This document shows, piece after piece, positions 5,317-37,340 of a DNA stretch of 64,000 nucleotides. The DNA is taken from positions 146,957 to 210,956 of the IMG/VR virus record IMGVR_UViG_3300034101_004588; one strand, written 5' to 3'. The translations under genes and the position numbers were made by a program. A model generated the notes under the pieces. That model ran no database searches, was not told where the DNA came from, and worked only from the letters and a program-made list of their open reading frames with translations. Positions within the stretch are counted from its first letter, which is position 1; every line of letters starts with the position of its first letter.

Positions 5317-5940
5317 TTATATATTTATACAAATATCATTCAGTTTTGACATAAGTGTTTCATCTTTTATATAATGAAAAGATACATAGTCTGCTATTTT
5401 ATCTTCTGGTATGTTGTAATAAGAAGGAGGATGACATTTAAAAATATCATTATGAGTAAATTTTATACCTTTTTCTCGGGTATTTAATCCAAAAGTAACA
5501 TCACTATGAGTAGTTTTAAAATTTTTAAAATCTTTATATAAAGGTATTAAATTCTGATGCACTAAAAATCCTGCTCCTCCTTGTGGGTAATGTAAATCAC
5601 CATAACATCCAAAACAATCCATACCATGAACAGATTGTGGATCAAAATTTTGTAGAATTTTTAATAAGAATTTTGTGTTAACAAAACAATCATCATCACA
5701 AAAATAAAACCACTCATATTCATTAATTAAATTCTTGTTAATATATTCAAAAATTCCTTTAATTTTTTCTTCCACGTCATCTACATCACATACTTTAATA
5801 ATTTTGTTATTTTTATCTTCATATTCAGCATAAAAATGTATATCACAATTTTTGCCCCAAGTATTTAAAATTGCTTGTTGTCTTTCCTTGCTATTAAGAT
5901 ATTTTTCAGAAGTTAATATTAAAATCAATAAAGGTTTCAT
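5317..5940 (-). CDS. Fringe/galactosyltransferase-like (GT31-type) glycosyltransferase
   Basis: AILNTWG, WFYFCDDDCFV DxD motif, YPQGGAGF, SDVTFG, FH motif. Confidence 0.8.
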   Translation of the reverse strand: MKPLLILILTSEKYLNSKERQQAILNTWGKNCDIHFYAEYEDKNNKIIKVCDVDDVEEKIKGIFEYINKNLINEYEWFYFCDDDCFVNTKFLLKILQNFDPQSVHGMDCFGCYGDLHYPQGGAGFLVHQNLIPLYKDFKNFKTTHSDVTFGLNTREKGIKFTHNDIFKCHPPSYYNIPEDKIADYVSFHYIKDETLMSKLNDICINI

Positions 5941-9084: not shown

Positions 9085-9092
9085 TATAAATA
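9085..9092 (+). promoter_or_regulatory. T4-type late promoter box
   Basis: TATAAATA 6 nt before the ATG at 9099. Confidence 0.65.
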
Positions 9093-10429: not shown

Positions 10430-10824
10430 ATTTTAGGTATAAATTTAGCTGTTGTATTAAAATTTTCTTGTCCTTGATCTACTAAAAGAACGTCAATACC
10501 TGCCATTATACAAAGAGTACAAACTTCAACGCTGTCATCAAGATGAAGTTTGCTGTTAAGTTTTTTAATAAAAGGAATTTTATTTTTACCTTCTGTGCAA
10601 ACAATAGATTTTATTGGAACTTCATACAATCTACAAAAACCTTCTACCTCTTTTTTATTATTCCAATTTCTAAACGTAACTATATGAATCTCATATCCTT
10701 TTTTGTGTTGGTCTTTTACAAAATCTATAATCCGTTGAATTGGTTTAAGAGTTGAGCCTCCCCAAGCAGTTGGTAATGTTTCCGCTAAACATTCATCAAA
10801 ATCAACTGTTATTATTTTATTCAT
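10426..10824 (-). CDS. HAD-superfamily phosphatase-like protein
   Basis: TVDFDECLA motif I, IVT motif II, K, LDD motif IV; ATG at 10824 avoids the tRNA. Confidence 0.75.
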   Translation of the reverse strand: MNKIITVDFDECLAETLPTAWGGSTLKPIQRIIDFVKDQHKKGYEIHIVTFRNWNNKKEVEGFCRLYEVPIKSIVCTEGKNKIPFIKKLNSKLHLDDSVEVCTLCIMAGIDVLLVDQGQENFNTTAKFIPKI

Positions 10825-10831
10825 AATAAAA

Positions 10832-10905
10832 TGGTAGGGAATGACGGTTACGCTCCGCCGACCCATGAGTGTAAATCACGTGTTTTACTATTAAACTAAT
10901 TCCCC
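10832..10905 (-). tRNA. tRNA-Val(UAC), atypical T loop
   Basis: CGTGA-TTTACAC-TCATG; T loop AGCGTAA; encoded CCA. Confidence 0.85.
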
Positions 10906-10907
10906 AA

Positions 10908-11171
10908 TTATCTTTTATACTTAAACCAAGCATACACTAAAATTGTGCACATAATAAGCCCAACACAATAATTTAAAAACCACCAAAGCCCAAAAGTTCC
11001 TAAAAACATATAAACCATCCCAGAAATATAACCTCCAATAGACATAAGAATAAGAGTTAAAGAAACGTCTCGGGAAGATTTGTTTTGAAATATTTTAACA
11101 ATTTGCGGAATGTAACAAAACATAAAACACAGAGTCATTACAATTCCTGCAATTTCTTTTACTATTTCCAT
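10908..11171 (-). CDS. PQ-loop / SemiSWEET-like membrane protein
   Basis: 87 aa, three hydrophobic helices, YIPQIVKIFQNKSSRDVSL. Confidence 0.85.
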   Translation of the reverse strand: MEIVKEIAGIVMTLCFMFCYIPQIVKIFQNKSSRDVSLTLILMSIGGYISGMVYMFLGTFGLWWFLNYCVGLIMCTILVYAWFKYKR

Positions 11172-11241
11172 TCAAGCATTATAGGTCTAACAGGCAAAGA
11201 ATGCAACAACAAAATAGCTTTTATAAACTAAATATATAAGA

Positions 11242-12006
11242 ATGTTAAGTCATCATTTAGTAAGAATTTATTCTAATTTATTGCAAGAAGGATATTACGA
11301 AAATCAATTAAATCCAAAGTTTTGGAGTCCACAAGGAATTTTTGATAGAAGTATAAGAGAAAAGCTGTTATCAATAGCTCATGAATTTTACGACAATTTA
11401 AAATTAGAAACTCCGATAATAGATATACAATTGACCGGATCTCTAGCAAATTATACCTACACAGATTATTCTGATTTAGATGTTCATATAATAATAGATT
11501 TTTCTAAAATCAATAAAGACGTAGAATTGGTTAAAAAAGCTCTAGACGGTATGAGATTTGTTTGGAATTTAAGGCACAATATAACTATTAAAGAACATGA
11601 AGTAGAAATGTATTTACAAGACATAAATGAAGTTCATTTGGCTTCTGGATTGTATAGTCTTATGGAAGATAAATGGCTTAAGAAACCAGTATATAATCCG
11701 CCAGAAATAGATGAAAAGGATGTAGATTTAAAATTTGAAGAATTTGCAAAAGAGATTACGCGTTTAGAAAATGTTTTAAATTTAACAAATTTAACTCGAG
11801 AAGAAGCTAAACATTTAAGAGAAAGAGCAATACACATTAAAGATAAAATACAAAATGGAAGAAAACAATGCTTAGGTGTAGGTGTATATAATGAGTTTTG
11901 TGTCGAAAATTTAGTTTTTAAAAAATTACGCAATGCTGGTTTAATTGCTAAATTAATAGAATTATCCAGTGAAGCTTACGATAAAATATATTCTGAAAGC
12001 GTTTAA
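11242..12006 (+). CDS. Pol-beta-superfamily nucleotidyltransferase
   Basis: TGSLANYTYTDYSDLDVH (GS...DxD) and a third acidic residue in EVEMY. Confidence 0.8.
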   Translation: MLSHHLVRIYSNLLQEGYYENQLNPKFWSPQGIFDRSIREKLLSIAHEFYDNLKLETPIIDIQLTGSLANYTYTDYSDLDVHIIIDFSKINKDVELVKKALDGMRFVWNLRHNITIKEHEVEMYLQDINEVHLASGLYSLMEDKWLKKPVYNPPEIDEKDVDLKFEEFAKEITRLENVLNLTNLTREEAKHLRERAIHIKDKIQNGRKQCLGVGVYNEFCVENLVFKKLRNAGLIAKLIELSSEAYDKIYSESV

Positions 12007-12007
12007 T

Positions 12008-12080
12008 TGGATCCTCCAGGATTCGAACCTAGAATGTAACGTCCGTAGCGTTAAGTGATAGTCCATTTCACTAAGGATCC
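12008..12080 (-). tRNA. tRNA-Arg(ACG)
   Basis: TAACG-CTACGGA-CGTTA; GGTTCGAATCC. Confidence 0.92.
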
Positions 12081-12084
12081 TAAA

Positions 12085-12161
12085 TGGCGGAACCAAGGGG
12101 ACTTGAACCCCTGGCCCCCTGCGTGACAGGCAGGTGCTCTAACCAACTGAGCTATGATTCC
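12085..12161 (-). tRNA. tRNA-Asp(GUC)
   Basis: canonical cloverleaf, CCTGTCA loop, encoded CCA. Confidence 0.96.
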
Positions 12162-12165
12162 AAAA

Positions 12166-12239
12166 TGGTGCGGTGACACGGTTACGCTCCGAGGCCCGAA
12201 GTTTGGAAGACTCCTGTACTACTATTATACTACCACCGC
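12166..12239 (-). tRNA. tRNA-Gly(UCC), atypical T loop
   Basis: GGAGT-CTTCCAA-ACTTC; T loop AGCGTAA; encoded CCA. Confidence 0.85.
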
Positions 12240-12246
12240 AAAAGAT

Positions 12247-12340
12247 TTGTGCTGTTATGGGTTCTGCCCTTTACTTACGTATGGTGACCCTACCACGTAG
12301 ACCAATGCCAAGGGTTATTAGGTTCTTAACCACAGCACAA
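12247..12340 (-). ncRNA. unidentified structured RNA between tRNA-Trp and tRNA-Gly
   Basis: closed by TTGTGCTGT/ACAGCACAA, internal hairpins, no ORF. Confidence 0.4.
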
Positions 12341-12342
12341 AA

Positions 12343-12417
12343 TGGCATGTCGGGTGGGTAATGCTCCCACATAAGGCAGTTTTGGAGACTGCTGCATTGC
12401 TTGTCTGCCACCGACAT
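12343..12417 (-). tRNA. tRNA-Trp(CCA), atypical T loop
   Basis: GCAGT-CTCCAAA-ACTGC; T loop AGCATTA; G73; encoded CCA. Confidence 0.87.
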
Positions 12418-12424
12418 ATAAAAA

Positions 12425-12497
12425 TAGCGGAGGTGGGAGTTGAACCCACCTATAGATGCTTATGAGACACCCCAATTCACCGGAATTGTACTCCGCA
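12425..12497 (-). tRNA. tRNA-Met(CAU), possibly initiator
   Basis: GGTGT-CTCATAA-GCATC; T1:T72 mismatch as in initiator tRNAs. Confidence 0.85.
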
Positions 12498-12498
12498 A

Positions 12499-12705
12499 TC
12501 AAATTACAAAAACTTTACATTTACCGTCTTTAGAATAATAAGACATAGCTTCTTCATAAGAATCAAACAAAACACAACTGCCATCAGAATAAATGGCTTT
12601 AAATTTAGTTGGATTCATTTTCAAAAAATCCATTGTCATGTCAATTGCTTTTTTAATTGCTTGGTCTGATGTTTGATCTTCAAGACTATTACCACTGGTT
12701 ATCAT
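12499..12705 (-). CDS. hypothetical protein
   Basis: 68-aa ATG ORF filling a gap between tRNAs. Confidence 0.7.
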   Translation of the reverse strand: MITSGNSLEDQTSDQAIKKAIDMTMDFLKMNPTKFKAIYSDGSCVLFDSYEEAMSYYSKDGKCKVFVI

Positions 12706-12738
12706 TAAAATACTTAATGGGTCTTAGACCATTAAATG

Positions 12739-12823
12739 CGGGTGCAGAGGGAATCGAACCCCCGAGGGAATGGTTACCCCAGCTGATTTCAAGTCAGTGT
12801 CCTCGACCAACCGGACTACACCC
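12739..12823 (-). tRNA. tRNA-Ser(UGA)
   Basis: CTTGAAA loop, long variable arm, G73. Confidence 0.92.
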
Positions 12824-12826
12824 TTT

Positions 12827-13021
12827 TTAAAATTTGTTATATTCTTTAGCAGTATCTACATAACCTTCATCTATTAAATATTTTTTTAAAGATTGAAAAT
12901 CATCTCTAGATAAAGGTTTTTTAGTACGGATTTCTAAATCAAATCCTTGTCCGTAAGGTTTAATAAAAACTTCAAATTTTCTTTTTTTAAATTCTAATTT
13001 TGTGTAATATGCATTTTTCAT
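12827..13021 (-). CDS. hypothetical protein
   Basis: 64-aa ORF between tRNAs. Confidence 0.7.
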   Translation of the reverse strand: MKNAYYTKLEFKKRKFEVFIKPYGQGFDLEIRTKKPLSRDDFQSLKKYLIDEGYVDTAKEYNKF

Positions 13022-13209
13022 AAATTGTTTTTAACCCATGATATTTCTAAAGTGTATCCTAACCAGGACACACCATACTTTGCACACGATGTAAAATTGT
13101 AATAAGAAAAATTAGGTATTTTAAAAAATATTGGCCATTTCCATAAACCAAAATTATATCTGCCTAATATAAGCCAATTGAATGTTGGTAGTATTGTTTG
13201 AGTTTTCAT
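13018..13209 (-). CDS. hypothetical aromatic-rich protein
   Basis: ATG at 13209 (MKTQTIL) avoids the tRNA-Ser overlap; ATGA coupling. Confidence 0.6.
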   Translation of the reverse strand: MKTQTILPTFNWLILGRYNFGLWKWPIFFKIPNFSYYNFTSCAKYGVSWLGYTLEISWVKNNL

Positions 13210-13221
13210 AAAAATATTTAA

Positions 13222-13309
13222 CGGAGCGAGCAGGATTTGAACCTGCGGAGGATTATTAGCCCTCGAAGCTTTAGCAAAGCTTTGTTTTAAACCACTCAAC
13301 CACCGCTCC
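13222..13309 (-). tRNA. tRNA-Ser(GCU)
   Basis: AAGCT-TTGCTAA-AGCTT; long variable arm; G73. Confidence 0.93.
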
Positions 13310-13315
13310 TTAAAA

Positions 13316-13397
13316 TGCTCAATGAGGGAGTCGAACCCACACGCCTTGCGGCTACAGATCCTAAGTCTGTCGTGTCTGCCAATTTCACCAATTGAGC
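13316..13397 (-). tRNA. tRNA-Leu(UAG)
   Basis: ACAGA-CTTAGGA-TCTGT; GCC-GCAA-GGC variable arm. Confidence 0.95.
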
Positions 13398-13399
13398 TT

Positions 13400-13470
13400 T
13401 GGAGAATACCAGAGTCGAACTGGTGACACCTGAATGCAAATCAGGAGTTATACCACTTAACTAATTCCCC
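13400..13470 (-). tRNA. tRNA-Ala(UGC)
   Basis: CCTGA-TTTGCAT-TCAGG; G3:U70. Confidence 0.94.
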
Positions 13471-13579
13471 GAAAGAGTGAGACGTTTACCCGCGACGTCT
13501 CAGGATCAATCTTAACTCTTCCTAGAGAGAACCCTGGAAAAAGAATGTCGGCTCCATTTACAAGATTAACCCAATTGTT

Positions 13580-13687
13580 TTACTTTACGGTGCAAACAGT
13601 CGTCTTACCACTTGGTTTACATTCTTTTTTTGATGCACATGCGGTAAGGGTCATAATTGCCACGATTGTTAGAATAATGTATTTCAT
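13580..13687 (-). CDS. small lipoprotein (35 aa; below the ORF-track cutoff)
   Basis: MKYIILTIVAIMTLTA-CASKKECKPSGKTTVCTVK: signal peptide with lipobox LTAC. Confidence 0.75.
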   Translation of the reverse strand: MKYIILTIVAIMTLTACASKKECKPSGKTTVCTVK

Positions 13688-13730
13688 AGAATCTTTATTA
13701 TAATACTTTTATTTATAATATCAACTGTTG

Positions 13731-13803
13731 GTTGCTCGACGGGGTTCGAACCCGCTCCGACAGAATCACAATCTGTAATGCTTACCGTTACACTACAAGC
13801 AAC
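13731..13803 (-). tRNA. tRNA-His(GUG)
   Basis: ACAGA-TTGTGAT-TCTGT; encoded G-1 opposite C73. Confidence 0.93.
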
Positions 13804-13811
13804 ATTAAAAG

Positions 13812-13891
13812 TTTTGGAGCAGGACTTACTTTTGTGCACTTTCCAATTACACAAAACGCCTAATACCAGAGGGTTGGTGGTTACTCCAAAA
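13812..13891 (-). ncRNA. unidentified stem-loop RNA between tRNA-Pro and tRNA-His
   Basis: TTTTGGAG/CTCCAAAA outer stem, TTTTGTGTA/TGCACAAAA inner stem. Confidence 0.35.
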
Positions 13892-13895
13892 AATA

Positions 13896-13968
13896 TCGGG
13901 ATAGAGGGGCTCGAACTCTCAATCTCCTGCTCCCAAAGCAGGCGCCTTAACCGTTGGGCTATATCCCG
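13896..13968 (-). tRNA. tRNA-Pro(UGG)
   Basis: CCTGC-TTTGGGA-GCAGG; C1-G72, A73. Confidence 0.94.
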
Positions 13969-13974
13969 TAAAAA

Positions 13975-14088
13975 TTATTTTTTAATTAAATTTCTTTTTT
14001 TAATTTCTGTTAAAAACTCCTCAGCTAATGTATTAAAATTTATATTTAAAGCCCATTCATAATAATATAAAAGCTCTTTGTTAGTCAT
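13975..14088 (-). CDS. small hypothetical protein
   Basis: 37 aa from ATG at 14088 (MTNKELLYYYEW). Confidence 0.4.
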   Translation of the reverse strand: MTNKELLYYYEWALNINFNTLAEEFLTEIKKRNLIKK

Positions 14089-14201
14089 TTTAGATTCGTG
14101 TTTTAAAGATCTTATTATTTTTAAACCAAAAAAATTTAAAAAAATTTCCAAAAAATTCACAATTAATAATACCTTAGAAAAACTTAAAATCAAGAAAATA
14201 A

Positions 14202-14272
14202 TCCCTCCTCAAGGTACTGCCCCTTGTTCTATCGGTTATCAACCGATTGTAATGCTACTATACTAAAGAGGG
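14202..14272 (-). tRNA. tRNA-Ile(GAU), atypical T loop
   Basis: ATCGG-TTGATAA-CCGAT; CAAGG-GGCAGTA-CCTTG. Confidence 0.85.
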
Positions 14273-14625
14273 GAAGGGCGTGTTTTTGTCCCGGAAACCG
14301 AAGGCGTCCCAACTTAATGTGTACCGGTTTTGTTATCACGCTAATCACCCGATTGGTGCGCATCAACATCATTGAGAGGCGTTCCGGGTCTACTATAATA
14401 TTTAGTTAGTATTTGAAGAGTTTTGCTCCGGAAATTGTCTCTTCTTCAACGAGACCGGGCATGGAGCCCGGAATCATCCGTCTAGCCTGTATTGAATCTA
14501 ATGCATGGAGTCATAGTTTTACGCAGCCTGACTCGTCCAGCAACAGTAAGAAAGTCCCAACACACTAACAGGCAAAGACTATCTTACCTGGATCTGGTTT
14601 ATTTGCTGCTGCCAGATCCGTTATC
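14273..14625 (-). ncRNA. unidentified ~350-nt multi-helix RNA (one or two RNAs)
   Basis: GC-rich, no credible ORF, multiple helices, promoter-like TTGCAA...TAGTAT just upstream. Confidence 0.5.
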
Positions 14626-14664
14626 TTTATACTATAGCAATATTTTATATTTGCAAATAGAAAA

Positions 14665-14741
14665 TGGAGTATCGGGTCAGACTTGCACTGACTAATGAAA
14701 GTTTTGCAGACTATCGCTTCGACTACTTTAGCTTCCGATAC
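14665..14741 (-). tRNA. tRNA-Cys(GCA)
   Basis: CTGCAAA loop; U73; CCA; T loop TGCAAGT. Confidence 0.88.
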
Positions 14742-14750
14742 TTTAAAATG

Positions 14751-14821
14751 AGCCTAGTGACAGAATCGAACTGACGTCAGATGATTACAAATCAACCGTT
14801 TTACCATTAAACTAACCAGGC
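14751..14821 (-). tRNA. tRNA-Thr(UGU)
   Basis: TTTGTAA loop; GCCTGGT/ACTAGGC acceptor. Confidence 0.92.
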
Positions 14822-14827
14822 ATAAAA

Positions 14828-14898
14828 TGCGAGTACTCGGTAATGCTCCGAGGCCTAAAACTTGGCAAGCTTCCGTTCTACTATTAAACTATACCCGC
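14828..14898 (-). tRNA. tRNA-Gly(GCC), atypical T loop
   Basis: TTGCCAA loop; CTCGG-AGCATTA-CCGAG. Confidence 0.87.
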
Positions 14899-14990
14899 TT
14901 AAATTATATACACCTCTGAGTTACCTCACCCACGGAATTCACGGTGGTTGTTTTGGTGATTCAGGTTCACCTCCCATAAAACCTTTAAAA

Positions 14991-15030
14991 TTAAAAACCC
15001 GCTTTCCATTTTATTGGAATAAGCGGGTTT
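14991..15030 (-). terminator. intrinsic terminator of the putative tRNA-operon attenuator
   Basis: AAACCCGCT-TA-TTCCA-ATAAAA-TGGAA-AGCGGGTTT followed by TTAATTTT. Confidence 0.8.
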
Positions 15031-15060
15031 AGTTGACAATAAAAATGTACAAACCCGCTA
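15022..15060 (-). promoter_or_regulatory. putative antiterminator helix
   Basis: TAGCGGGTTT (15060-15051) is complementary to the terminator 5' arm AAACCCGCT (15030-15022). Confidence 0.7.
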
Positions 15061-15126
15061 GACACTCCAACAAAGTCTTCGTGGACTTGTTGAAATTGCA
15101 TTGCTGGTTGTTGTATGAATTTTCAT
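15058..15126 (-). CDS. putative attenuator leader peptide (22 aa, MKIHTTTSNAISTSPRRLCWSV)
   Basis: ATG just downstream of TTGAAA-N16-TAAATA; its TAG stop overlaps the antiterminator strand. Confidence 0.65.
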   Translation of the reverse strand: MKIHTTTSNAISTSPRRLCWSV

Positions 15127-15324
15127 TGAATGTAATATTATTTATCTTTTATATGAGAATTTCAAGCAAATTTTATATATTTTTTTAAGATATAAGATTC
15201 TTTTGATAGGTGATGTAATTTAATAATGTAATAATCTATTGTTTCTCCTATCACAATCACTATATTTCCTTTTACAAAAGGTTTTACATCTTCTATAATC
15301 AAAGCTTGTTTATATGGAAGATTT

Positions 15325-15510
15325 TTATTCATTAAAAATTTGAGATATTAAATCTATTAATCTTTTTTCATTTTTAGTAGCTATTTGTATAGCTGCTAAT
15401 TGTTTTACTGCTTTTTCTTTAGTCGGAAAGGGTTTTTTACTAAAACATTTAGAACTATTTTTTTTACAAACCTTATAACCAGAATTTATTTTACGTATAG
15501 TATATGGCAT
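15325..15510 (-). CDS. small basic hypothetical protein of large phages
   Basis: MPYTIRK...GYKVCKK...TKEKAVKQLAAIQI. Confidence 0.8.
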   Translation of the reverse strand: MPYTIRKINSGYKVCKKNSSKCFSKKPFPTKEKAVKQLAAIQIATKNEKRLIDLISQIFNE

Positions 15511-15540
15511 ATTATTATTTATAGTAAAATAGAAAGGAAG

Positions 15541-15996
15541 AGGAGATGAGGGGACTCGAACCCCTGTCCAAATACTTTACACTAAAAGGTCTACATGTTT
15601 AAGTGTCTTTAGCATTTCAGCCACCATACGGTGACGAAGACTTTAGGCTGCTTGGCGACACTAACCGAGTTTTTAGTCTGCCTATAGACATTACCGCACA
15701 TCTACAAACGGAGGATTCTTTTTGTTACGTTGATACAGTCCACAATTCAACTACCTCTGCATATCAATATAACCTTAGAGGATCTGGTTATAAGGACCTT
15801 AGGCTGCTAAGAGATACTCTTCTTCAACACCACCGAGGAACTCGGAAGCATTGTTGAAGATATACTCGGCTTCAGCCAAGATAGCATCAGTATTATCTTC
15901 TGCTTTTAGTTTTTTGATCTGCTTTTTACGAGGCCAGCTGATCAACCTCGACATGCACTCTTAGTTTCAACTATTTGTCGAAACCAGTACATCCCC
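15541..15996 (-). ncRNA. ssrA: tmRNA
   Basis: 5' GGGGATGTACTGGTTTCGAC; 3' GGACAGGGGTTCGAGTCCCCTCATCTCC; G3:U70; tag frame 15903-15799 ending LLAA-stop. Confidence 0.95.
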
Positions 15997-16009
15997 GAAT
16001 TTTCAAAGA

Positions 16010-16774
16010 TCAAACTTCCATTGAAGGTATTGAATGTCCACCCATAGGATTGCTTGTCGCTTCCTGTGGTTTTGGAGCACCTGCTACTTCGTATATAGAT
16101 TTTCTAACACTATCTAAATCTGTAATAAAATAATCTGTTCCGTTTATATTAATAGCTGCAATACTGTCTATGCTAATAATTCTTGGTTCTATTCCTTTTT
16201 CCACTCCTTGATAAGATGCTGAACCTTTAGAAGGAGATTTATATTGAGATACTTCATCTTTATTGGTTACTTCAAAGTCTGAAGATGAATTGGGATTTTC
16301 TTTATTAGCTTTAACCAACACTGGTGAAAAACTAGCAGATATAGCAACCGGAAGATACCGTAAATAAATCTGTCCTTCTTTTTGGCGCAAAGAGGTACTA
16401 CCTTCTACATCATCATAAACACTTTTTTGAGCAACAAAATCTGTTGTTTTTCCTTCTCTTTCTCTTTGACGATTAACAGCTGCTGTATAATCAAAACCAA
16501 TTTGTCCATTGACTTGAGATACTTTAGCAAAATATGCTTTACCATGTTTTAAACCCGGCAAAACAAATGAAGGAGAAGGTGCTTTGTTGCTAGACTCTCT
16601 AGTAACTTGAGTAACACTAAAGAAGTTAGTTCCTTTGTGTTTTTGTTCTACCTCTTTAATAATATTAATCAATTCTGATTTAGTGATATTACCTTGCTTT
16701 TCTGGTGTTGATGATATGCCGTAAGCCATTTCGTTGTATACCCTTTCTAGTAGTATGTGATCTTTATTTTTCAT
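16010..16774 (-). CDS. hypothetical protein with KDxILLE N-terminus
   Basis: 254-aa ORF, MKNKDHILLERVYNEM. Confidence 0.85.
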   Translation of the reverse strand: MKNKDHILLERVYNEMAYGISSTPEKQGNITKSELINIIKEVEQKHKGTNFFSVTQVTRESSNKAPSPSFVLPGLKHGKAYFAKVSQVNGQIGFDYTAAVNRQREREGKTTDFVAQKSVYDDVEGSTSLRQKEGQIYLRYLPVAISASFSPVLVKANKENPNSSSDFEVTNKDEVSQYKSPSKGSASYQGVEKGIEPRIISIDSIAAININGTDYFITDLDSVRKSIYEVAGAPKPQEATSNPMGGHSIPSMEV

Positions 16775-29446: not shown

Positions 29447-29476
29447 ATCATATATTTATAGAAACCAGGTGGTATT

Positions 29477-31378: not shown

Positions 31379-32032
31379 ATGGCTTATATCAATACCGATA
31401 TTCCTTTATTCTCTTGTCTGCTAGATACTAGCTTTCTTTATGATAAAGACCCAAGAACCACCCAAGAATATCTTAAAGTAGAGGTCTTTGGATTTACTTC
31501 TCTTAATCGAAGATGCGGTCTCTTCTCGGTTATGTCAGAAATGGGTAGTGTTCATACTCGAGTACCTCTTCATTACCTTATAGCCGAGGACACGGATAAT
31601 CCCTCTCATTACCCGCTCGACTGGTTGCAACTTTGGGATTCCTATTCTCCTTATGTGCAATGTATAAGATATGAGTACCTCAAAAACCTCACTTGTAAGA
31701 TCTGCCTGAAAGATAGGAACTATGAGTCGGCTCGCTATCTCATGACCTTTGATTGGTGCTATGGACCGGAATTCACCACCGGACAAAGTGAAAATCCGGG
31801 AGGTCATAAACAAGGACATCTACTAAAGGGCGATCACGGACAATACTATATACAACCGGGTAATAGAATAATCTGGAGAGACGGAGGAGCCTGGATTGGT
31901 AAAGAATTACAAGGGCATGAAAAATGGAAAGTCTTTTCTAAAGAGTTCTCTTGTGAACAAACAGGTTCTCGATGGTTTGCCGGAGAAGAAGAATTACACT
32001 TCTACCAATTTGAAAAGAATAAAGACAGGTGA
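31379..32032 (+). CDS. phage hypothetical protein
   Basis: ATG at 31379 (MAYINTDIP); LQLWD...YLMTFDW...HKQGH...QPGNRIIWRD pattern. Confidence 0.8.
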   Translation: MAYINTDIPLFSCLLDTSFLYDKDPRTTQEYLKVEVFGFTSLNRRCGLFSVMSEMGSVHTRVPLHYLIAEDTDNPSHYPLDWLQLWDSYSPYVQCIRYEYLKNLTCKICLKDRNYESARYLMTFDWCYGPEFTTGQSENPGGHKQGHLLKGDHGQYYIQPGNRIIWRDGGAWIGKELQGHEKWKVFSKEFSCEQTGSRWFAGEEELHFYQFEKNKDR

Positions 32033-32242
32033 TATAAAGATAAAGGGGTACCTATATAAAGGGGTAGGTACCGGGATTGCCCCGAGACCCGGGTATCGAT
32101 TATTCTCGTCTATTATTGTTTTTGAACTGCCGGGGTCCTAGGATACCGCCCGTTGTCGTATTAACTTGCTTTTCCCTAGAATCCGATTTATAATTCCGCG
32201 CCTAGGGTTTCTTGGTCAAGGGGTTCGAACCCAGGTGACCTT

Positions 32243-32542
32243 CTACAGCTCGTACCCTTCAGACTCTTTCTTAGACTGGTGTTGATCCACGTGCCTGGCT
32301 AGCCGGCGAAGCTCTTGGCGGCACATCTCCTTAGCTTCTTCATTAGCCGAGGACTCCAGAACCGTCATACAGATATTCACCGCCTCTTCCCAAGAAGGGG
32401 TTAGGTCAATGACTCGACGATTGGTGTTGGCAGGAAGAGCTTGGAAGGCTTCGGCCATCTCTTCATTAGCTTCGGACTCGGTGACATAGACTTCTTCACA
32501 TTGCACTTGAGTGTTGAAGTCATCGGTGTAGTTCTTATTCAT
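32243..32542 (-). CDS. hypothetical early protein
   Basis: 99 aa, directly behind promoter cassette. Confidence 0.8.
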   Translation of the reverse strand: MNKNYTDDFNTQVQCEEVYVTESEANEEMAEAFQALPANTNRRVIDLTPSWEEAVNICMTVLESSANEEAKEMCRQELRRLARHVDQHQSKKESEGYEL

Positions 32543-32552
32543 AACAGTTATT

Positions 32553-32581
32553 AGTGTAGAGACTATTTGGGGGAAACACCA
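32553..32581 (-). promoter_or_regulatory. repeated early promoter
   Basis: TGGTGT-TTCCCCCAAATAGTCTC-TACACT. Confidence 0.7.
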
Positions 32582-32680
32582 GACTTTCTTTTTATTCTCT
32601 CAAAGTAATTTTAACGATGAAAGTAATCCTGCCTTTGTATTATTTTATACCGTTGTATTAAATTGCGGACTGCTATGAGA

Positions 32681-32727
32681 GATAAAAGAACCCTCCAGCT
32701 TCCTATTACGGAAGCTGGAGGGGGTTT
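32681..32727 (-). terminator. intrinsic terminator
   Basis: CCCTCCAGCTTCC/GGAAGCTGGAGGG 13-bp stem then TTCTTTT. Confidence 0.8.
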
Positions 32728-32766
32728 CGTTGACACGGGTTCCTCTACTCAGAGGACCGAGAGTGT

Positions 32767-33132
32767 TTACTTCTTCCGCTTCTTCTTAGCGGCTTTCTTG
32801 ACCGGAGCCTCTTCAACCGCAACTGTCACCATCTCCTCTTCAATCTTAGCCTCGACCGCTTCTTTGACCTTAGGGTCAGCGGCGATGACTTCGAACTTGG
32901 GCTTGGAGACTTTGGCCGAGGAGACTTTCTCTTCGGTGTACTCTACGCCGATCCCGAGGAAGGATCCTTTGCCGTTGGAGGCGGTGATCCGACGAAGCGC
33001 TCCGAAGACGGGACGATACTCGGCGGTGATGTTGTATTCGCTAGCGAGAGTGTCGATAACGAACTTCGGGGTGACCGTTTCATTCTTCATCAGAATGTCG
33101 CGGATGGCTTTGCTCATTGGGTTCTTTTCCAT
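32767..33132 (-). CDS. hypothetical protein, possibly DNA-binding (K/A-rich tail)
   Basis: 121-aa ORF, PVKKAAKKKRKK end. Confidence 0.8.
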   Translation of the reverse strand: MEKNPMSKAIRDILMKNETVTPKFVIDTLASEYNITAEYRPVFGALRRITASNGKGSFLGIGVEYTEEKVSSAKVSKPKFEVIAADPKVKEAVEAKIEEEMVTVAVEEAPVKKAAKKKRKK

Positions 33133-33224
33133 ATTTTTATTTTATTGGTTGTTTCTCTTGAGAGGTGGTCTCTCTTGATTGTTTATATCTTAAAGGTTTT
33201 TCTCGGGACTGGCAACCGGGTTTT

Positions 33225-33458
33225 TTAAATTTCGAAAGCCTTGGCATACCCCGACACTCGCGGCGAGAAGCAACGATCTTCGTTGATGATGCCATTGAGG
33301 TCATGTCCGATAGTGGAGACTATCGCCGCGTACTTCTCCTTAGAGCTGTACGTGGGGTGGTTGTGAACAAACCTGACATAAGCCAGGAGGTCTTTGAGGA
33401 AGGTTTTATCTTTCATAGTCTTTATTATGGAGGAAATAAGGGGGAAGAGCCACCTCAA
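33225..33458 (-). CDS. hypothetical early protein
   Basis: 77-aa ORF coupled to the upstream gene. Confidence 0.65.
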   Translation of the reverse strand: MRWLFPLISSIIKTMKDKTFLKDLLAYVRFVHNHPTYSSKEKYAAIVSTIGHDLNGIINEDRCFSPRVSGYAKAFEI

Positions 33459-33658
33459 ATCTCCTTCAGATGTTTGGGTTTCTTGAGAGAGAAGTTCTTG
33501 GGTTTCTTCTTGAGGACATTGAGGTAGTCCAAAGTATCGTCAATCAATTGATAGATAGCTTTTATCTCCTCGGCTTTGGCTTTGGGGTCTTCTAGCATGT
33601 TGGCTAGACACTGCAAAGCCTCTTGGACTCGTTGGATCTCTTTCTCGATGCGATTCAT
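33455..33658 (-). CDS. hypothetical early protein
   Basis: 67-aa ORF. Confidence 0.75.
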   Translation of the reverse strand: MNRIEKEIQRVQEALQCLANMLEDPKAKAEEIKAIYQLIDDTLDYLNVLKKKPKNFSLKKPKHLKEI

Positions 33659-33802
33659 TTAAAAGGAATAAGGGTTACCTGTCGAAGGGGGATGACTGGG
33701 TAGTACGTAATAGGTGGATACTCTTTCGTAGTAGCCATTGACTATCTTGACAAAGCAGCCTAAGACAAAGAGACTGAAGAGGAGTGCAAGAGAGTATTTC
33801 AT
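33659..33802 (-). CDS. small membrane protein (47 aa; missed by the track)
   Basis: MKYSLALLFSLFVLGCFVKIV...; ATGA-coupled upstream, abuts the next ATG. Confidence 0.6.
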   Translation of the reverse strand: MKYSLALLFSLFVLGCFVKIVNGYYERVSTYYVLPSHPPSTGNPYSF

Positions 33803-34074
33803 TGATGGAGAAAATCCCAGGCAGAATTAGGAATCTCTTCGCGCACCGCGGTGTCCAGGCTATCCGCCAGGTCCCGAGCTTCTTTAACCCGATTCTGCTC
33901 CAGCAGATGCCCAATGCAAAAGAGGTCAGCGGCATCGGTATAGGAGATGAGGAGATTGGCTCGATACTCTTTAACATTTTCTTTCTCCCAGGCCGTCTGC
34001 CAGTACTCGAGATACTTTGTAGAAGCCTCTTTGACGATGTTAGCCGCGGAGATGTGGGTGAGTTTTATTTTCAT
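33799..34074 (-). CDS. hypothetical early protein
   Basis: ATG 8 nt after the -10 box. Confidence 0.8.
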   Translation of the reverse strand: MKIKLTHISAANIVKEASTKYLEYWQTAWEKENVKEYRANLLISYTDAADLFCIGHLLEQNRVKEARDLADSLDTAVREEIPNSAWDFLHQ

Positions 34075-34082
34075 CAAACACT

Positions 34083-34111
34083 AGTGTAGGGGTTATTCGG
34101 GGGAATCTCAA
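34083..34111 (-). promoter_or_regulatory. repeated early promoter
   Basis: TTGAGA-TTCCCCCGAATAACCCC-TACACT. Confidence 0.8.
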
Positions 34112-34425
34112 GCCAATTCTCTAACCACTTTTAGGTAACTAGCTAGGATCCAGGTACCTCCTTGGATGGCAGGTCTCTTGTACTCTTGATAGTTAGTAAC
34201 TTCTACCTCACACCAGACTCTCTTCTCTCCACTGCGAAGCTCTGTCTTAAGATGATCCGCCTTAGGTTCCACCGCACAATGCCAACCTGGACGATAGGCA
34301 AAGCCTTTGGTGGCATGACACTCGGCCGGCATCCATTGTCCGAAAGGTACTACTTGAGTGCGATTGATAAAGAGAGGACCAAGAGTTCCGTCTTTACGTT
34401 TGCGAAAGAGTTTGTAGGCTTTCAT
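34108..34425 (-). CDS. phage hypothetical protein
   Basis: MKAYKLFRKRKDGTLGPLFIN...GFAYRPGWHC. Confidence 0.85.
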   Translation of the reverse strand: MKAYKLFRKRKDGTLGPLFINRTQVVPFGQWMPAECHATKGFAYRPGWHCAVEPKADHLKTELRSGEKRVWCEVEVTNYQEYKRPAIQGGTWILASYLKVVRELA

Positions 34426-34428
34426 GGT

Positions 34429-34689
34429 TTAGGCGTCAAGTTTAAATGCGGTCATGATACGGTTGTACCAAATAGGGTTCTTGTCTTTGAGGATATCCAG
34501 GGGGGCTTTGCCATCGTGGTACTCCTCAAAGTATTCCTCTGGGGTGTGGTTGGCGATAAGCTCTTTGCGGAACTTAGCCATCGTGAACGGGCTGCCCGAG
34601 TACTTGAAACGAGCAACGAACTGGCGGTTGGGTCCGAAGAGCAGGTACTGCCCTTCCTTCTTGAGATTGTCTTTGGTGAACTTATTCAT
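34429..34689 (-). CDS. hypothetical early protein
   Basis: ATG at 34689 (MNKFTK) behind promoter cassette. Confidence 0.8.
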   Translation of the reverse strand: MNKFTKDNLKKEGQYLLFGPNRQFVARFKYSGSPFTMAKFRKELIANHTPEEYFEEYHDGKAPLDILKDKNPIWYNRIMTAFKLDA

Positions 34690-34699
34690 AACAAATACT

Positions 34700-34728
34700 A
34701 GTGTAGGGGTTATTCGGGGGAAACTCAA
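34700..34728 (-). promoter_or_regulatory. repeated early promoter
   Basis: TTGAGT-TTCCCCCGAATAACCCC-TACACT. Confidence 0.8.
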
Positions 34729-34731
34729 CCC

Positions 34732-34947
34732 TTATTTGATCCTCTTGACTTTGAGAGCTGTCGGCTCGATATCACGGTCTCCGAACTCGGATCCGAAAGC
34801 ATAGAAGCTGCCATGATAACCGTTCCACTCTTGAATGAAATTGAAAAGCTGGGTTTGGAAGGCTTTCATGGAGGTGCTGTCCAGCTGTTCTCCTTTAAGA
34901 GTATTGAGGTTGAAGCTGATTTCGAATTTGAAGGTGTTCTTATTCAT
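34732..34947 (-). CDS. hypothetical early protein
   Basis: ATG at 34947 (MNKNTF) behind promoter cassette. Confidence 0.75.
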   Translation of the reverse strand: MNKNTFKFEISFNLNTLKGEQLDSTSMKAFQTQLFNFIQEWNGYHGSFYAFGSEFGDRDIEPTALKVKRIK

Positions 34948-34957
34948 AACAAATACT

Positions 34958-34986
34958 AGTGTAGGGGTTATTCGGGGGAAACACAA
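34958..34986 (-). promoter_or_regulatory. repeated early promoter
   Basis: TTGTGT-TTCCCCCGAATAACCCC-TACACT. Confidence 0.8.
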
Positions 34987-35228
34987 GTCAAAACATCGTC
35001 TTCGGAAAGGGCATTGTAATCCAACCAGCCAAAGAGTTCCTGCTTACGAGCTACGGAGATATAAGAATAGTCTTTTACTTTCTCTCCATAGAAGCCACAG
35101 ATGAAGCCGGCATGATCTAAAGCATCTTGCAAAGAAGAATGGGTTCTTACTTTAAGATGGGTAATGAGGTTGTGAACCTCAAAGCCGCGATCGCTTTTGT
35201 AGATCTTGACTACTTGGGACTCTTTCAT
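34968..35228 (-). CDS. hypothetical early protein
   Basis: 86-aa ORF with TACACT box upstream. Confidence 0.75.
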   Translation of the reverse strand: MKESQVVKIYKSDRGFEVHNLITHLKVRTHSSLQDALDHAGFICGFYGEKVKDYSYISVARKQELFGWLDYNALSEDDVLTCVSPE

Positions 35229-35256
35229 GATCCCTAGTGTATATCAGATTAGGGGG

Positions 35257-35478
35257 TCAGGCCAGACTGAAAAAGTCACTAGAAACCTTTTTAACATTGT
35301 CTGTCTCTGGGTAAAACCAAACTGTGAAGGACATCGGTTGAGATTCCTCTTCTTCGGTTTTCAGATAGACAGCACAAGACCAAACATCTCCATCAATGTT
35401 CCAGGCTTCTACTTCCAAGACCTCAGCTCCAAAGTTGTACGCTTCTAGAGCCACATTAACTTTCTCTTCTCTATTCAT
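35257..35478 (-). CDS. hypothetical early protein
   Basis: 73 aa, ATGA-coupled. Confidence 0.75.
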   Translation of the reverse strand: MNREEKVNVALEAYNFGAEVLEVEAWNIDGDVWSCAVYLKTEEEESQPMSFTVWFYPETDNVKKVSSDFFSLA

Positions 35479-35723
35479 ATCAGAACTCCATTCTCCTGGA
35501 GGTATTGCTGTCTTTCAACGGATGACAGATGCTTTTGTAATTTGACATTGTCCTTAGAGCTTACATCTTTGAAGATGACCCCGTCTATATTCCATCGACT
35601 CTCATAGACCTCAAAGAGATGCAGCAGGAACTTCTGATGATGCCTGGCCAGGAAGTCATGGTCCTGTCGATTGATAAAGAAACTATCTACAGAAGAGACT
35701 ACAGCACTCTGATAGGTCTTCAT
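35475..35723 (-). CDS. hypothetical early protein
   Basis: 82 aa, ATGA-coupled. Confidence 0.75.
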   Translation of the reverse strand: MKTYQSAVVSSVDSFFINRQDHDFLARHHQKFLLHLFEVYESRWNIDGVIFKDVSSKDNVKLQKHLSSVERQQYLQENGVLI

Positions 35724-35980
35724 AGAACAGAATCCTCTAGAATGTTTTCTTCATAGCATTCTTGGAACGACCCGTATTCTGAAAACATATGATAGAGTTC
35801 GTGGTTGATATCCGAGGTACCTACTTCTTCTGCTCCGGCATTAACCAGACGACGAGCGGCTAGACGACGAAGAAAAGGTTTAATGAGGTCCTCCGTATTA
35901 CGATAGGCCTGCATGGCCTCTTCAAAGGTGGGTTTAGTAGCTTCCATGATAGTGGTAACGATGAAGACGGTCTTGGGCAA
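35720..35980 (-). CDS. hypothetical early protein
   Basis: 86 aa, TTG start. Confidence 0.65.
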   Translation of the reverse strand: MPKTVFIVTTIMEATKPTFEEAMQAYRNTEDLIKPFLRRLAARRLVNAGAEEVGTSDINHELYHMFSEYGSFQECYEENILEDSVL

Positions 35981-36109
35981 TCAAACGATCGATCCATCCA
36001 CTTTGATTGAACCAGGTGATGTTATGAGTCAGGAGACTAGGTTTCGGCTTACGGTAACGCCGGCTGATAACTTCAAAGAGCCTATGGAGTTTGTTTTTCA
36101 TCGTCTGTA

Positions 36110-36138
36110 AGTGTAGATGGTATTAGGGGGAAGTTCAA
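36110..36138 (-). promoter_or_regulatory. repeated early promoter
   Basis: TTGAAC-TTCCCCCTAATACCATC-TACACT, ATG at 36101. Confidence 0.75.
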
Positions 36139-36464
36139 GCCTCGATTTTCACATCAACGAAGATGTCCTCTTTGAATGACCAGAGAATATCTTTGAGGCG
36201 AAAGCCAGGAGAACATCCACAGCTGCAGCCACACTTCTGAGACCAGGAAGGTTTAACGGTCTTGATCTGATCTTCTGTGAACCCTAGTCGCCGAAGGATA
36301 GTCGGGATCTGTTTCTTGAATTCCAGATGAGGACGGCTACGGCGATTGACTAGATTCTCCATCACAGACTCTCCGGTGAGGAAGAAGTACATATGAGGAG
36401 ATGTCCGACGACGATCGTAACCGTTCATCGGTTGTTTGGTGATTCCTTCAATGGTTATTTTCAT
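36135..36464 (-). CDS. phage hypothetical protein
   Basis: WSQKCGCSCGCSPGF motif. Confidence 0.85.
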   Translation of the reverse strand: MKITIEGITKQPMNGYDRRRTSPHMYFFLTGESVMENLVNRRSRPHLEFKKQIPTILRRLGFTEDQIKTVKPSWSQKCGCSCGCSPGFRLKDILWSFKEDIFVDVKIEA

Positions 36465-36472
36465 CGTTTATA

Positions 36473-36501
36473 AGTGTAGAGGAAATTCGGGGGAAACACA
36501 A
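36473..36501 (-). promoter_or_regulatory. repeated early promoter
   Basis: TTGTGT-TTCCCCCGAATTTCCTC-TACACT. Confidence 0.8.
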
Positions 36502-36540
36502 GGAAAAAAAGAGGGGGTCCCAGCCGCACTAGGACCCCCT
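36502..36540 (-). terminator. intrinsic terminator
   Basis: AGGGGGTCC/GGACCCCCT stem followed by CTTTTTTTT. Confidence 0.8.
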
Positions 36541-36555
36541 CAACCACACCCACAA

Positions 36556-36924: not shown

Positions 36925-36963
36925 CAGGATAAGGTTAAAGGATTTTATCGGGAATTGCCCGCT

Positions 36964-37212: not shown

Positions 37213-37259
37213 AGTCTATAGAATAAAAGGGTTTAGGGGGAAAGGCAACAACATTAAGA

Positions 37260-37334
37260 TGGCACCTAGGGTAGGATTCGAACCTACAACCGAGCGGTTA
37301 ACAGCCGCTAGCTCTACCATTGAGCTACCTAGGT
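37260..37334 (-). tRNA. tRNA-Asn(GUU)
   Basis: AGCGG-CTGTTAA-CCGCT; G73; CCA. Confidence 0.95.
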
Positions 37335-37340
37335 GTGACT

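Follow-up and report, generated by a model that had tools for sequence, protein, structure and literature searches.

A putative leader-peptide attenuator between a promoter and a block of phage tRNA genes

Introduction

In the leader-peptide attenuators of enterobacterial amino-acid operons (trpL, hisL, thrL, leuL, pheL, ilvL), a short promoter-proximal ORF is followed by RNA that can form three helices, 1:2, 2:3 and 3:4, the last of which is an intrinsic terminator before the regulated genes. The stop codon is placed so that a terminating ribosome covers region 2, while stalling gives read-through. In the T-box riboswitches of Firmicutes, a terminator/antiterminator decision also reports tRNA charging and feeds back on translation-supply genes. 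However, T-boxes bind uncharged tRNA directly, have a specifier loop and a conserved T-box sequence, and need no ORF.

Phage tRNA arrays, by contrast, are usually treated as passively expressed cargo. Here, we analyze a 64,000-nucleotide stretch of a viral record (IMGVR_UViG_3300034101_004588; hereafter, the window), in which a leader-peptide attenuator had been predicted from sequence alone to lie in front of a phage tRNA operon. As in the enterobacterial leaders, a short ORF, three competing helices and a terminator lie between a promoter and the genes downstream. Unlike those leaders, the genes are tRNAs and a non-coding RNA rather than biosynthetic enzymes, the element is encoded by a phage, the 5' leader is very short and lacks a Shine-Dalgarno (SD) sequence, and in place of a run of one amino acid's codons there are 14-17 kinds of amino acid, moderately biased to the array's own tRNAs in most lineages. 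We found no prior description of such an element in full-text literature searches.

Results

A short ORF and three mutually exclusive helices precede the tRNA array

We first asked whether the predicted elements are present, and found all of them on the minus strand:

15134-15169 (minus): sigma-70-like promoter, with -35 TTGCTT at 15169-15164, -10 GATAAA at 15146-15141 and a likely transcript start at A15133; GATAAATA at 15146-15139 also resembles the T4-type late motif.
15058-15126 (minus): leader ORF of 22 codons plus a TAG stop (MKIHTTTSNAISTSPRRLCWSV), from ATG 15126 to TAG 15060-15058.
15084-15128 (minus): region 1, the 5' arm of a long hairpin, covering the start codon and codons 1-14; the Thr/Ser codons ACAACAACCAGC pair with the GCGGGUUUGU of region 2.
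15037-15077 (minus): region 2, the 3' arm of the long hairpin, containing the stop codon, seg1 AGCGGGTTT (15059-15051) and a U-rich tail; it pairs either with region 1 or with region 3.
15011-15030 (minus): region 3, seg2 AAACCCGCT (15030-15022) plus the inner 5' half, shared by the antiterminator (with region 2) and the terminator (with region 4).
14984-15030 (minus): predicted intrinsic terminator, stem 15030-15015 with 15008-14995, loop 15014-15009, then UUUUUAAUUUU.
14899-14990 (minus): conserved spacer RNA motif between the terminator and the first tRNA, with a covarying hairpin, GGUGA/UCACC, and an invariant core, CCACCGUGAAU(U)CCGUGGGU.
12008-14898 (minus): tRNA array, Gly(GCC), Thr(UGU), Cys(GCA), an unknown structured RNA, Ile(GAU), Pro, His, Ala, Leu(UAG), Ser(GCU), Ser(UGA), Leu(UAA), Trp, Gly(UCC), Asp, Arg(ACG).

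The first tRNA, at 14898-14828, was missed by ARAGORN's default settings but is a tRNA by Rfam (52 bits); the Cys and Ile anticodons were read by inspection of the sequence. The ORF encodes 14 kinds of amino acid. The 9-mer AGCGGGTTT overlaps the TAG and occurs again at 15003-14995 (seg3), in the 3' arm of the terminator, and these two sites and the complement AAACCCGCT are the only three exact copies in the 64 kb. The terminator has a folding energy of -18.3 kcal/mol (z = -5.25), and an apical hairpin lies at roughly 15095-15062 (-12.3 kcal/mol). To test whether the alternative pairing could arise by chance, we compared it with shuffled sequences. The upstream strand pairs with the terminator's 5' arm at -25.1 kcal/mol, against -8.0 +/- 2.1 in 2000 shuffles, none of which reached it, and it ranks first of the 25 terminator-like hairpins in the window.

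Our analysis also amends the original prediction in three respects. First, the complementarity extends beyond the 9-mer, to 15074-15050 paired with 15030-15011. Second, the whole ORF region folds into a long hairpin, 15128-15037 (-27.9 kcal/mol, z = -4.2), which is the missing 1:2 helix of a classic attenuator. Third, while a consensus scan also found promoter-like hexamers here, TTGAAA at 15165-15160 and TAAATA/AATAAT at 15143-15137, alignment with relatives places the promoter in a slightly different register, with TTGCTT (overlapping the TTGAAA), a 17-nt spacer and GATAAA.

The arrangement is conserved in related contigs

We next searched for relatives. A blastn search of 14700-16100 against cultured phages found no match, and no homologue turned up through flanking proteins. 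Relatives found through the flanking 367-aa phosphoesterase (contigs L002-L010) share the tmRNA but lack the element, by blastn and by covariance model. The adjacent 56-aa protein has only identical copies, and the three contigs that carry it are 100% identical over the element and thus uninformative. The 254-aa neighbour has no relative above 58% identity, and those relatives are not syntenic. An exact three-segment DNA pattern and a tRNA-Gly 24-mer found only the window's own contig. In contrast, anchoring on conserved RNA inside and before the array, using a covariance model and a spacer anchor, recovered 12 distinct homologous leaders from 14 contigs. Many metagenome hits to the 19-mer anchor are GC-rich bacterial coding sequence, and were discarded by inspection.

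Consistent with the original prediction, for which conservation of the arrangement in relatives was a stated test, each of these leaders has the promoter, an ATG 6-10 nt after the likely start, an ORF of 22-25 codons, a stop abutting or overlapping GCGG(G/T)T, the three competing helices, and a tRNA array in conserved order about 90 nt downstream (Gly, Thr, Cys, Pro, His, Ala and so on). The promoter, TTGC(A/C/T)(A/T)-N16/17-(C/T/A/G)(A/T)TAA(T/A)-N7-A(C/T)ATT, is conserved in register, although one leader has a 3-nt shorter -10-to-start gap. The peptides diverge strongly, as expected of a leader whose frame matters and whose product does not. The distances from ATG to GCGGG are 68, 72, 74, 75 and 78 nt, all frame-consistent, and among the distinct leaders the stops are 10 TAA, 2 TAG and 1 TGA, in two registers. 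The spacer is also conserved as an RNA: all 5 pairs of its hairpin covary, and no Rfam family matches it.

The competing helices are supported by comparison between lineages

To ask whether the helices themselves are maintained, we folded the leaders individually and looked for compensatory changes. All leaders fold as a long hairpin plus terminator, and the antiterminator is present in the truncated-transcript fold in 11 of 13 leaders. The long hairpin has the same topology in all 8 lineages folded, with z-scores from -1.2 to -5.4 (z <= -3.25 in 6 of 8). In the terminator, 97.4% of cells are paired, 3 pairs show compensatory changes, and the covariation score is 0.153 against 0.089 (0 of 500 shuffles reach it). 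RNAalifold on the full leader alignment recovers only the terminator, because the ORF interior does not align; the long hairpin does not align column by column between clades, and column-wise covariation of the antiterminator is weak because its core is invariant. We therefore tested whether each strand pairs better with its own partner than with another lineage's partner, and found that it does for all three helices (p about 0.002, 0.002 and 0.0004; about 0.002 for the antiterminator and about 0.0004 for the long hairpin). In relatives, the flank of seg2 follows the tail of seg1, for example ATA with TAT in the relative L024. Seg1 plus its tail nevertheless resembles seg3 plus its tail (16 of 18 positions, p = 0.0015), and thus part of the complementarity could come from an old duplication; we regard this as a possible origin, not as an alternative to function.

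If the element is a ribosome-mediated switch, then the position of the ribosome should decide between the helices. In a masking model of 8 lineages, a stall with the A site anywhere from codon 2 to about 3 codons before the stop gives the antiterminator, while a ribosome at the stop gives 0 antiterminator pairs and a full terminator. Without a ribosome, however, the truncated transcript's minimum-energy fold already contains the antiterminator in 6 of 8 lineages, and the switch therefore has to be kinetic. In addition, the U-run after the terminator is weak in relatives (UUUAAAAUUCU), making termination efficiency uncertain.

Translation of the ORF is inferred from the local norm. The 5' untranslated stretch is only 6-10 nt and has no SD, but the phage's genes lack SD sequences (1 of 65), and many have a promoter-like motif 6-10 nt before the ATG; the ATAAATA motif lies at this distance in 7 of 68 long ORFs, against 1.2% of all ATGs. 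The leader's short SD-less 5' end is therefore typical of real genes here. Bacteroidetes-type promoter motifs, and TGTATATAAT genome-wide, showed no meaningful enrichment.

Leader codons are moderately biased to the tRNAs of the array in most lineages

The original prediction held that the peptide samples codons matching the array's tRNAs. This holds statistically in most lineages, though only moderately so. In the window, 15 of 22 codons are read by array tRNAs, compared with 8.4 +/- 2.3 in gene windows (p = 0.005) and 9.8 +/- 2.0 in composition-matched shuffles (p = 0.01); the other two frames score 5-6. The bias is specific to this array's tRNAs rather than to all the phage's tRNAs, for which the count is 18 against 14.9 (p = 0.12). 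Across lineages, 9-12 of the 13 shared array tRNAs are sampled, against 6.2-7.8 +/- 1.4 expected (per-lineage p from 0.001 to 0.19), and frame 0 matches more array tRNAs than frames +1 and +2 in every lineage. However, the bias is moderate against composition-matched controls and absent in the L030 group of leaders (p = 0.35-0.46), and, as the lineages are related, the tests are not independent. His, Cys and Trp are all present in 11 of 12 leaders, with Cys at different positions. Apart from Thr-Thr-Thr in the window, there is no run of one regulatory codon as in the trp, his or thr leaders.

The element is not a member of the Trp_leader, T-box or riboswitch families

We also compared the element with described families. 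The Rfam Trp_leader model (RF00513) scores 22.3 bits against a 41-bit threshold, and the match is mostly the CCCGC/GCGGG stem of the terminator; we therefore do not consider the element a member. There was no T-box hit at E <= 10 in 13900-15600 or 14950-15200, no match to any riboswitch family, and here the ORF is the conserved feature. An automated search for leader ORFs at other spacer-motif loci was noisy, and only one, L038, was confirmed by hand. Interestingly, this analogous but unrelated leader (29 codons, 17 kinds of amino acid) is followed by the same uncharacterised spacer RNA but by no detectable tRNA.

Discussion

Collectively, our data are most consistent with a model in which a ribosome-mediated transcription attenuator sits between a conserved promoter and a transcription unit made of a conserved spacer RNA followed by about 15 phage tRNA genes. 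In the absence of any expression data, we put the probability of this reading at roughly 0.78. In this model, the transcript starts near 15133 and a ribosome loads on the AUG at 15126. If nothing is translated, region 1 pairs with region 2, regions 3 and 4 form the terminator, and transcription stops near 14990. If the ribosome runs to the stop codon, it covers seg1, and region 3 is again free for the terminator. If the ribosome stalls earlier, it holds region 1 open and leaves region 2 free to pair with region 3 as soon as the latter is made, such that the terminator cannot form in time and RNA polymerase reads through into the spacer RNA and the tRNA genes. Translation of the ORF, termination at the hairpin, the direction of the switch and the nature of the signal are inferred. 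As the leader codons are unusually varied and moderately enriched for codons read by the tRNAs of this same array, the most likely signal is slow decoding caused by shortage of any of several charged tRNAs, which would give homeostatic feedback on the phage's tRNA supply.

An alternative, which we consider less likely, is that the same switch reads general translation status, such as ribosome availability, elongation rate or shut-off of host translation, and that the varied codons simply reflect an unconstrained peptide inside a constrained RNA structure. Consistent with this notion, there is no run of a single codon, the codon bias is only p = 0.01-0.4 against composition-matched shuffles, much of the conserved codon content (CAU ACA, ACC UGG ACA) lies in paired segments, and a stall at nearly any codon, from 2 to about n-3, gives the same outcome. 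The preference for frame 0, the specificity for this array's tRNAs and the recurrence of Cys codons at different positions argue against it.

It is improbable that the RNA is ribosome-independent, either a small RNA gene or a switch flipped by a protein, a tRNA or a small molecule that binds the long hairpin, with an incidental ORF. A promoter, a roughly 145-nt structured RNA and a terminator are the anatomy of an sRNA; frame +2 is also free of stops in the lineages checked, and being stop-free is not rare here (42% of shuffles). The terminator loop CAAUAAAAUG is invariant, which hints at a further contact. However, the ATG is conserved, and the ORF ends exactly at seg1 in five length classes and with all three stop codons, including a 1-nt register shift that still gives a stop; the rough chance of this under no coding constraint is about 0.01 or less.

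Similarly doubtful is the possibility that the 3:4 hairpin is a processing or stability element (an RNase III or RNase E site, or a 3' end protector), so that the switch controls maturation or decay of the tRNA precursor. The weak U-run in most relatives, and downstream genes that are all RNAs needing processing, would fit this view, but the window's own hairpin has a good U-run (UUUUUAAUUUU), its stem is GC-rich and canonical, and the geometry is that of a terminator/antiterminator pair. Least likely is an ordinary terminator ending the upstream tmRNA and small-gene unit, with the array running from its own promoter (TGTATATAAT at 14912-14903) and the third copy of the 9-mer a relic of a duplication: although TATAAT lies 4 nt before the tRNA, a similar TATATATAAT precedes tRNA-Tyr at 1720, GTATATAA precedes tRNAs in L003 and L005, and seg1 plus tail resembles seg3 plus tail, the TATAAT is not conserved in the homologues (which have GGTTCATAAAAA and similar sequences there), the promoter upstream of the leader is conserved in register, the spacer is conserved as an RNA, the flank of seg2 follows the tail of seg1 rather than seg3 (for example in the relatives L024 and L028), and the ORF and the 1:2 hairpin would be left unexplained.

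More tentatively, the leader may be a multi-codon meter of tRNA supply, its short frame kept stocked with codons for nearly every tRNA of the array it controls, including the rare His, Cys and Trp. A shortage of any one of them, whether from codon mismatch with the host or from host enzymes that cut tRNAs, would then stall the ribosome and switch on the whole tRNA block, and the new tRNAs would switch it off again. That the unrelated leader in L038 has the same logic and precedes the same spacer RNA suggests a wider and so far undescribed class of regulators attached to phage tRNA-type transcription units.

A conserved leader-peptide attenuator in front of a phage tRNA array would mean that the phage measures decoding speed and adjusts its own tRNA output. 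It would extend a textbook mechanism, known for amino-acid operons, to tRNA genes and to viruses, and would offer a natural sensor that reads many codons at once. It bears on the current interest in host tRNA-cleaving defences and phage tRNA replacement, and would make the long-standing question of why phages carry tRNAs directly testable.

Anatomy of the leader and its tRNA array

To define the element, we read the minus strand from 15169 to 14984, and found the following, in order, with the downstream array and the upstream neighbors:

15169-14984 (minus strand), the whole element, beginning with promoter-like hexamers
15126 (minus strand), an ATG that opens a 22-codon frame
15060-15058 (minus strand), the TAG that ends this frame
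15059-15051 (minus strand), AGCGGGTTT (seg1), overlapping that stop
15030-15022 (minus strand), AAACCCGCT (seg2), the exact complement of seg1
15003-14995 (minus strand), AGCGGGTTT again (seg3), followed by UUUUUAAUUUU
14899-14990 (minus strand), a spacer between the terminator and the first tRNA
14898-14828 (minus strand), the first tRNA of an array that runs to 12008
14273-14667 (minus strand), a GC-richer stretch of about 395 nt with no ORF, between tRNA-Cys and tRNA-Ile
15996-15538 (minus strand), a phage-encoded tmRNA, just upstream of the leader along with two small genes

Seg1, seg2 and seg3 are the only three exact copies of the 9-mer in 64 kb. The tRNA that the original prediction placed at 14898 is real: Rfam scores it at 52 bits, although it was missed by ARAGORN at its default settings. 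In all, six tRNA genes on the minus strand were seen by Rfam but missed in this way, at 14828-14898, 14668-14741, 14202-14272, 12425-12497, 12169-12239 and 10835-10905 (Gly GCC, Cys GCA, Ile GAU, Leu UAA, Gly UCC and Val UAC, respectively), and several of them have weak stems. The Cys and Ile anticodons were read from the sequence. The tmRNA (Rfam, 135 bits), which ARAGORN's default settings also did not report in the window, is conserved in relatives (contigs L006-L010 and L025).

Alternative RNA structures

We next asked how this RNA folds. The 148-nt RNA from 15131 to 14984 folds at -46.2 kcal/mol (z = -6.65), and is made up of a long hairpin, 15128-15037, at -27.9 kcal/mol (z = -4.2), and the terminator, at -18.3 kcal/mol (z = -5.25). 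In the long hairpin, the start codon and the Thr/Ser codons pair with the stop codon, seg1 and its tail. The alternative pairing of region 2 (15074-15050) with region 3 (15030-15011) is worth -25.1 kcal/mol, whereas shuffled or random genomic upstream sequence gives -8.0 +/- 2.1, and none of 5000 reached the observed value. This is the best such pairing among the window's 25 terminator-like hairpins. The only other strong canonical terminators in the window (about 36502-36541 and 38473-38523) lie in a block at 32000-38000 that has 45-47% G+C, in a genome of about 30% G+C, and that also contains a tRNA-Asn/Lys pair. The anatomy is therefore the full 1:2 / 2:3 / 3:4 scheme, which is more than the original prediction described. 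With a modeled ribosome footprint, a stall at any A-site codon from 2 to 19 gives the antiterminator in the transcript made so far, whereas a ribosome at the stop removes the antiterminator, and the terminator forms. The switch must be kinetic.

Homologous leaders in related contigs

Our first searches for relatives were unsuccessful. Cultured phages gave no match, and relatives found through a flanking phosphoesterase share the tmRNA but not the element. The adjacent 56-aa gene exists only as identical copies, on contigs that are 100% identical over the element, and the 254-aa neighbor has no relative above 58% identity, with those relatives having a different gene order. The phage is a distant T4-like virus, with a portal about 27% identical to those of cyanomyoviruses. 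Distant relatives of this phage (contigs L015:2377-3192 (-), L020:1-989 and 10527-11765, and L017:4194-5597 (-)) carry an Anti-Pycsar (Apyc1) family gene, IS605 OrfB/TnpB-like genes and a gene with faint TROVE (Ro60-like) hits.

Thus, we turned to conserved RNA. The GC-richer stretch inside the array (14273-14667) has a core hairpin, CCGGGCUCCAUGCCCGG, that is exactly conserved in five other viral contigs (L022-L026); this RNA has no Rfam match, and its resemblance to the RNase P CR-I sequence is superficial. A covariance model built from the window's element then found homologues in these contigs, about 90 nt upstream of their first tRNA, with E-values from 1e-12 to 4e-8. An invariant 19-mer in the spacer between terminator and tRNA recovered more contigs from the viral and metagenome collections. 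After unrelated GC-rich coding hits were discarded by inspection, 12 distinct leaders from 14 contigs remained.

The promoter of these leaders is conserved in register, as TTGC(A/C/T)(A/T), a 16-17-nt spacer, a TATAAT-like hexamer, 7 nt, then A(C/T)ATT. An ATG lies 6-10 nt after that A, and opens a frame of 22, 23, 24 or 25 codons whose stop always abuts or overlaps GCGG(G/T)T, with TAA, TAG and TGA all used. In the two TAG cases the register against GCGGG shifts by one base and the frame shifts with it, and the distances from ATG to GCGGG are 68, 72, 74, 75 and 78 nt, each frame-consistent. Being stop-free is not rare in this composition (42% of shuffles), and frame +2 is also open, so the weight of the argument rests on the ATG, on frame-preserving length changes, and on the stop position. 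We roughly estimate the chance of that combination at about 0.01 or less. The peptides, in contrast, are barely alignable, as seen when the window's peptide is compared with MNHTITSSDAGCSAFWPRTTGTI and MKHTDTRLNMAISGLSGTWTPCSI. This is the pattern expected when the act of translation matters and the product does not.

Conservation of the competing helices

Every leader folds as long hairpin plus terminator, and in the transcript truncated before seg3, the antiterminator is in the minimum-energy fold in 11 of 13. Long-hairpin z-scores in eight lineages are -4.2, -5.0, -4.4, -1.6, -3.6, -1.2, -5.4 and -3.3. The terminator is 97.4% paired, with three compensatory pairs (score 0.153 against 0.089; 0 of 500 shuffles reach it), although its U-run is weak in relatives. 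Interestingly, the apical loop of the terminator with its closing bases (CAAUAAAAUG, window 15009-15018, minus strand) is invariant in all 12 leaders although the stem below it covaries, suggesting an extra contact or function.

The antiterminator core is invariant and so uninformative, but its extension is lineage-specific in register, with 83% of cells paired, against 33-45% when the partner is slid. We therefore compared each strand's own partner with partners taken from other lineages, and found that own partners are more stable for the antiterminator (p about 0.002), the terminator (p about 0.002) and the long hairpin (p about 0.0004). The similarity between seg1 and seg3 had suggested a duplication. 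However, in two of the related contigs, L024 and L028, the flank of seg2 matches the tail of seg1 better than it matches seg3, which argues against the complementarity being only a relic of that duplication. The ribosome-mask model gives the same result in all eight lineages.

Translation context of the leader ORF

As the leader has no Shine-Dalgarno sequence, we wondered whether the ORF could be translated. The phage does not use Shine-Dalgarno sequences: only 1 of 65 long ORFs has one, against a 7.9% background. About 10% of long ORFs have an (N)ATAAATA motif 6-10 nt before the ATG, against 1.2% of all ATGs. Across the whole window this T4-late-promoter-like motif sits 5-10 nt before many start codons (for example, at 15516-15523, 37425-37432, 29453-29460, 5322-5329 (-) and 9085-9092 (+)) and 12 nt before tRNA-Lys at 37412, implying leaderless or near-leaderless mRNAs. 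Very short 5' ends without a Shine-Dalgarno sequence are therefore normal for real genes here, and the leader has GATAAATA 12 nt upstream. This removes an objection but does not show translation.

The downstream tRNAs and the codons of the leader

In every relative the leader is followed by the same conserved spacer RNA and then by tRNA-Gly(GCC), Thr(UGU), usually Cys(GCA), Pro, His, Ala, Leu(UAG), Ser, Ser, often Trp, Gly(UCC), Asp and Arg(ACG). The TATAAT directly before the window's tRNA-Gly is not conserved, and thus the conserved promoter upstream of the leader is the best candidate for the array's promoter.

The original prediction held that the peptide samples codons matching many tRNAs of the array, and so would act as a general sensor of tRNA depletion. 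To assay this, we counted the codons read by tRNAs of this array. In the window there are 15 of 22, whereas phage gene windows give 8.4 +/- 2.3 (p = 0.005), spurious short ORFs give 7.9 +/- 2.4, and dinucleotide shuffles of the ORF give 9.8 +/- 2.0 (p = 0.01); the other two frames score 5-6. The bias is specific to this array and does not extend to all the phage's tRNAs (p = 0.12). Across lineages, 9-12 of the 13 shared array tRNAs are sampled, against 6.2-7.8 +/- 1.4 expected, with per-lineage p-values from 0.001 to 0.19 and frame 0 always the highest. The count of matched codons is not significant in one set of leaders, the L030 group. As the lineages are related and the test was suggested by the data, we rate the sensor idea at about even odds. 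Amino acids without a tRNA in the array make up 1-4 of 21-24 residues, against 37% in the phage's proteins. His, Cys and Trp are all present in 11 of 12 leaders, and Cys sits at several different positions.

A conserved RNA between the terminator and the first tRNA

The spacer is itself a conserved RNA motif of about 90 nt, found at the following positions (L-numbers are contigs):

window 14899-14990 (minus strand)
L023:3119-3208
L024:2631-2722
L047:1182-1276 (minus strand)
L049:4268-4364 (minus strand)
L037:72-162 (minus strand)
L038:767-857

It has a 5-bp hairpin in which all five pairs covary, an invariant 19-mer CCACCGUGAAUCCGUGGGU, a hairpin of variable length, and two Shine-Dalgarno-like strings (GGAGGUGA and AGAGGUG). 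No Rfam family matches it. It also occurs between tRNAs or after tmRNA-like sequence in other contigs that have no leader, and in soil contigs. In L038 the motif is preceded by an independent analogue (L038:599-765) with no sequence similarity to the window's leader. This has a TTGACC-17-TAATAT promoter and a 29-codon ORF with 17 kinds of amino acid, whose TAA stop abuts GAGCGAC, which is complementary to the 5' arm of a strong terminator, and a long hairpin pairs the early codons with the stop region. No tRNA is detected in the next 840 nt. The spacer RNA may therefore be the primary regulated product.

Comparison with known attenuators

The element is not a sequence member of any Rfam leader family: Trp_leader scores 22.3 bits against a threshold of 41, mostly through the CCCGC/GCGGG stem. 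It is also not a T-box, and our literature searches found nothing comparable. Collectively, our data, which are entirely computational, indicate that the mechanism is most likely that of the trp, his, thr and leu leaders. The element differs from these in its target, which is tRNA genes and a non-coding RNA, in its codon logic, with many amino acids rather than a run of one, in its very short leader without a Shine-Dalgarno sequence, and in being viral.
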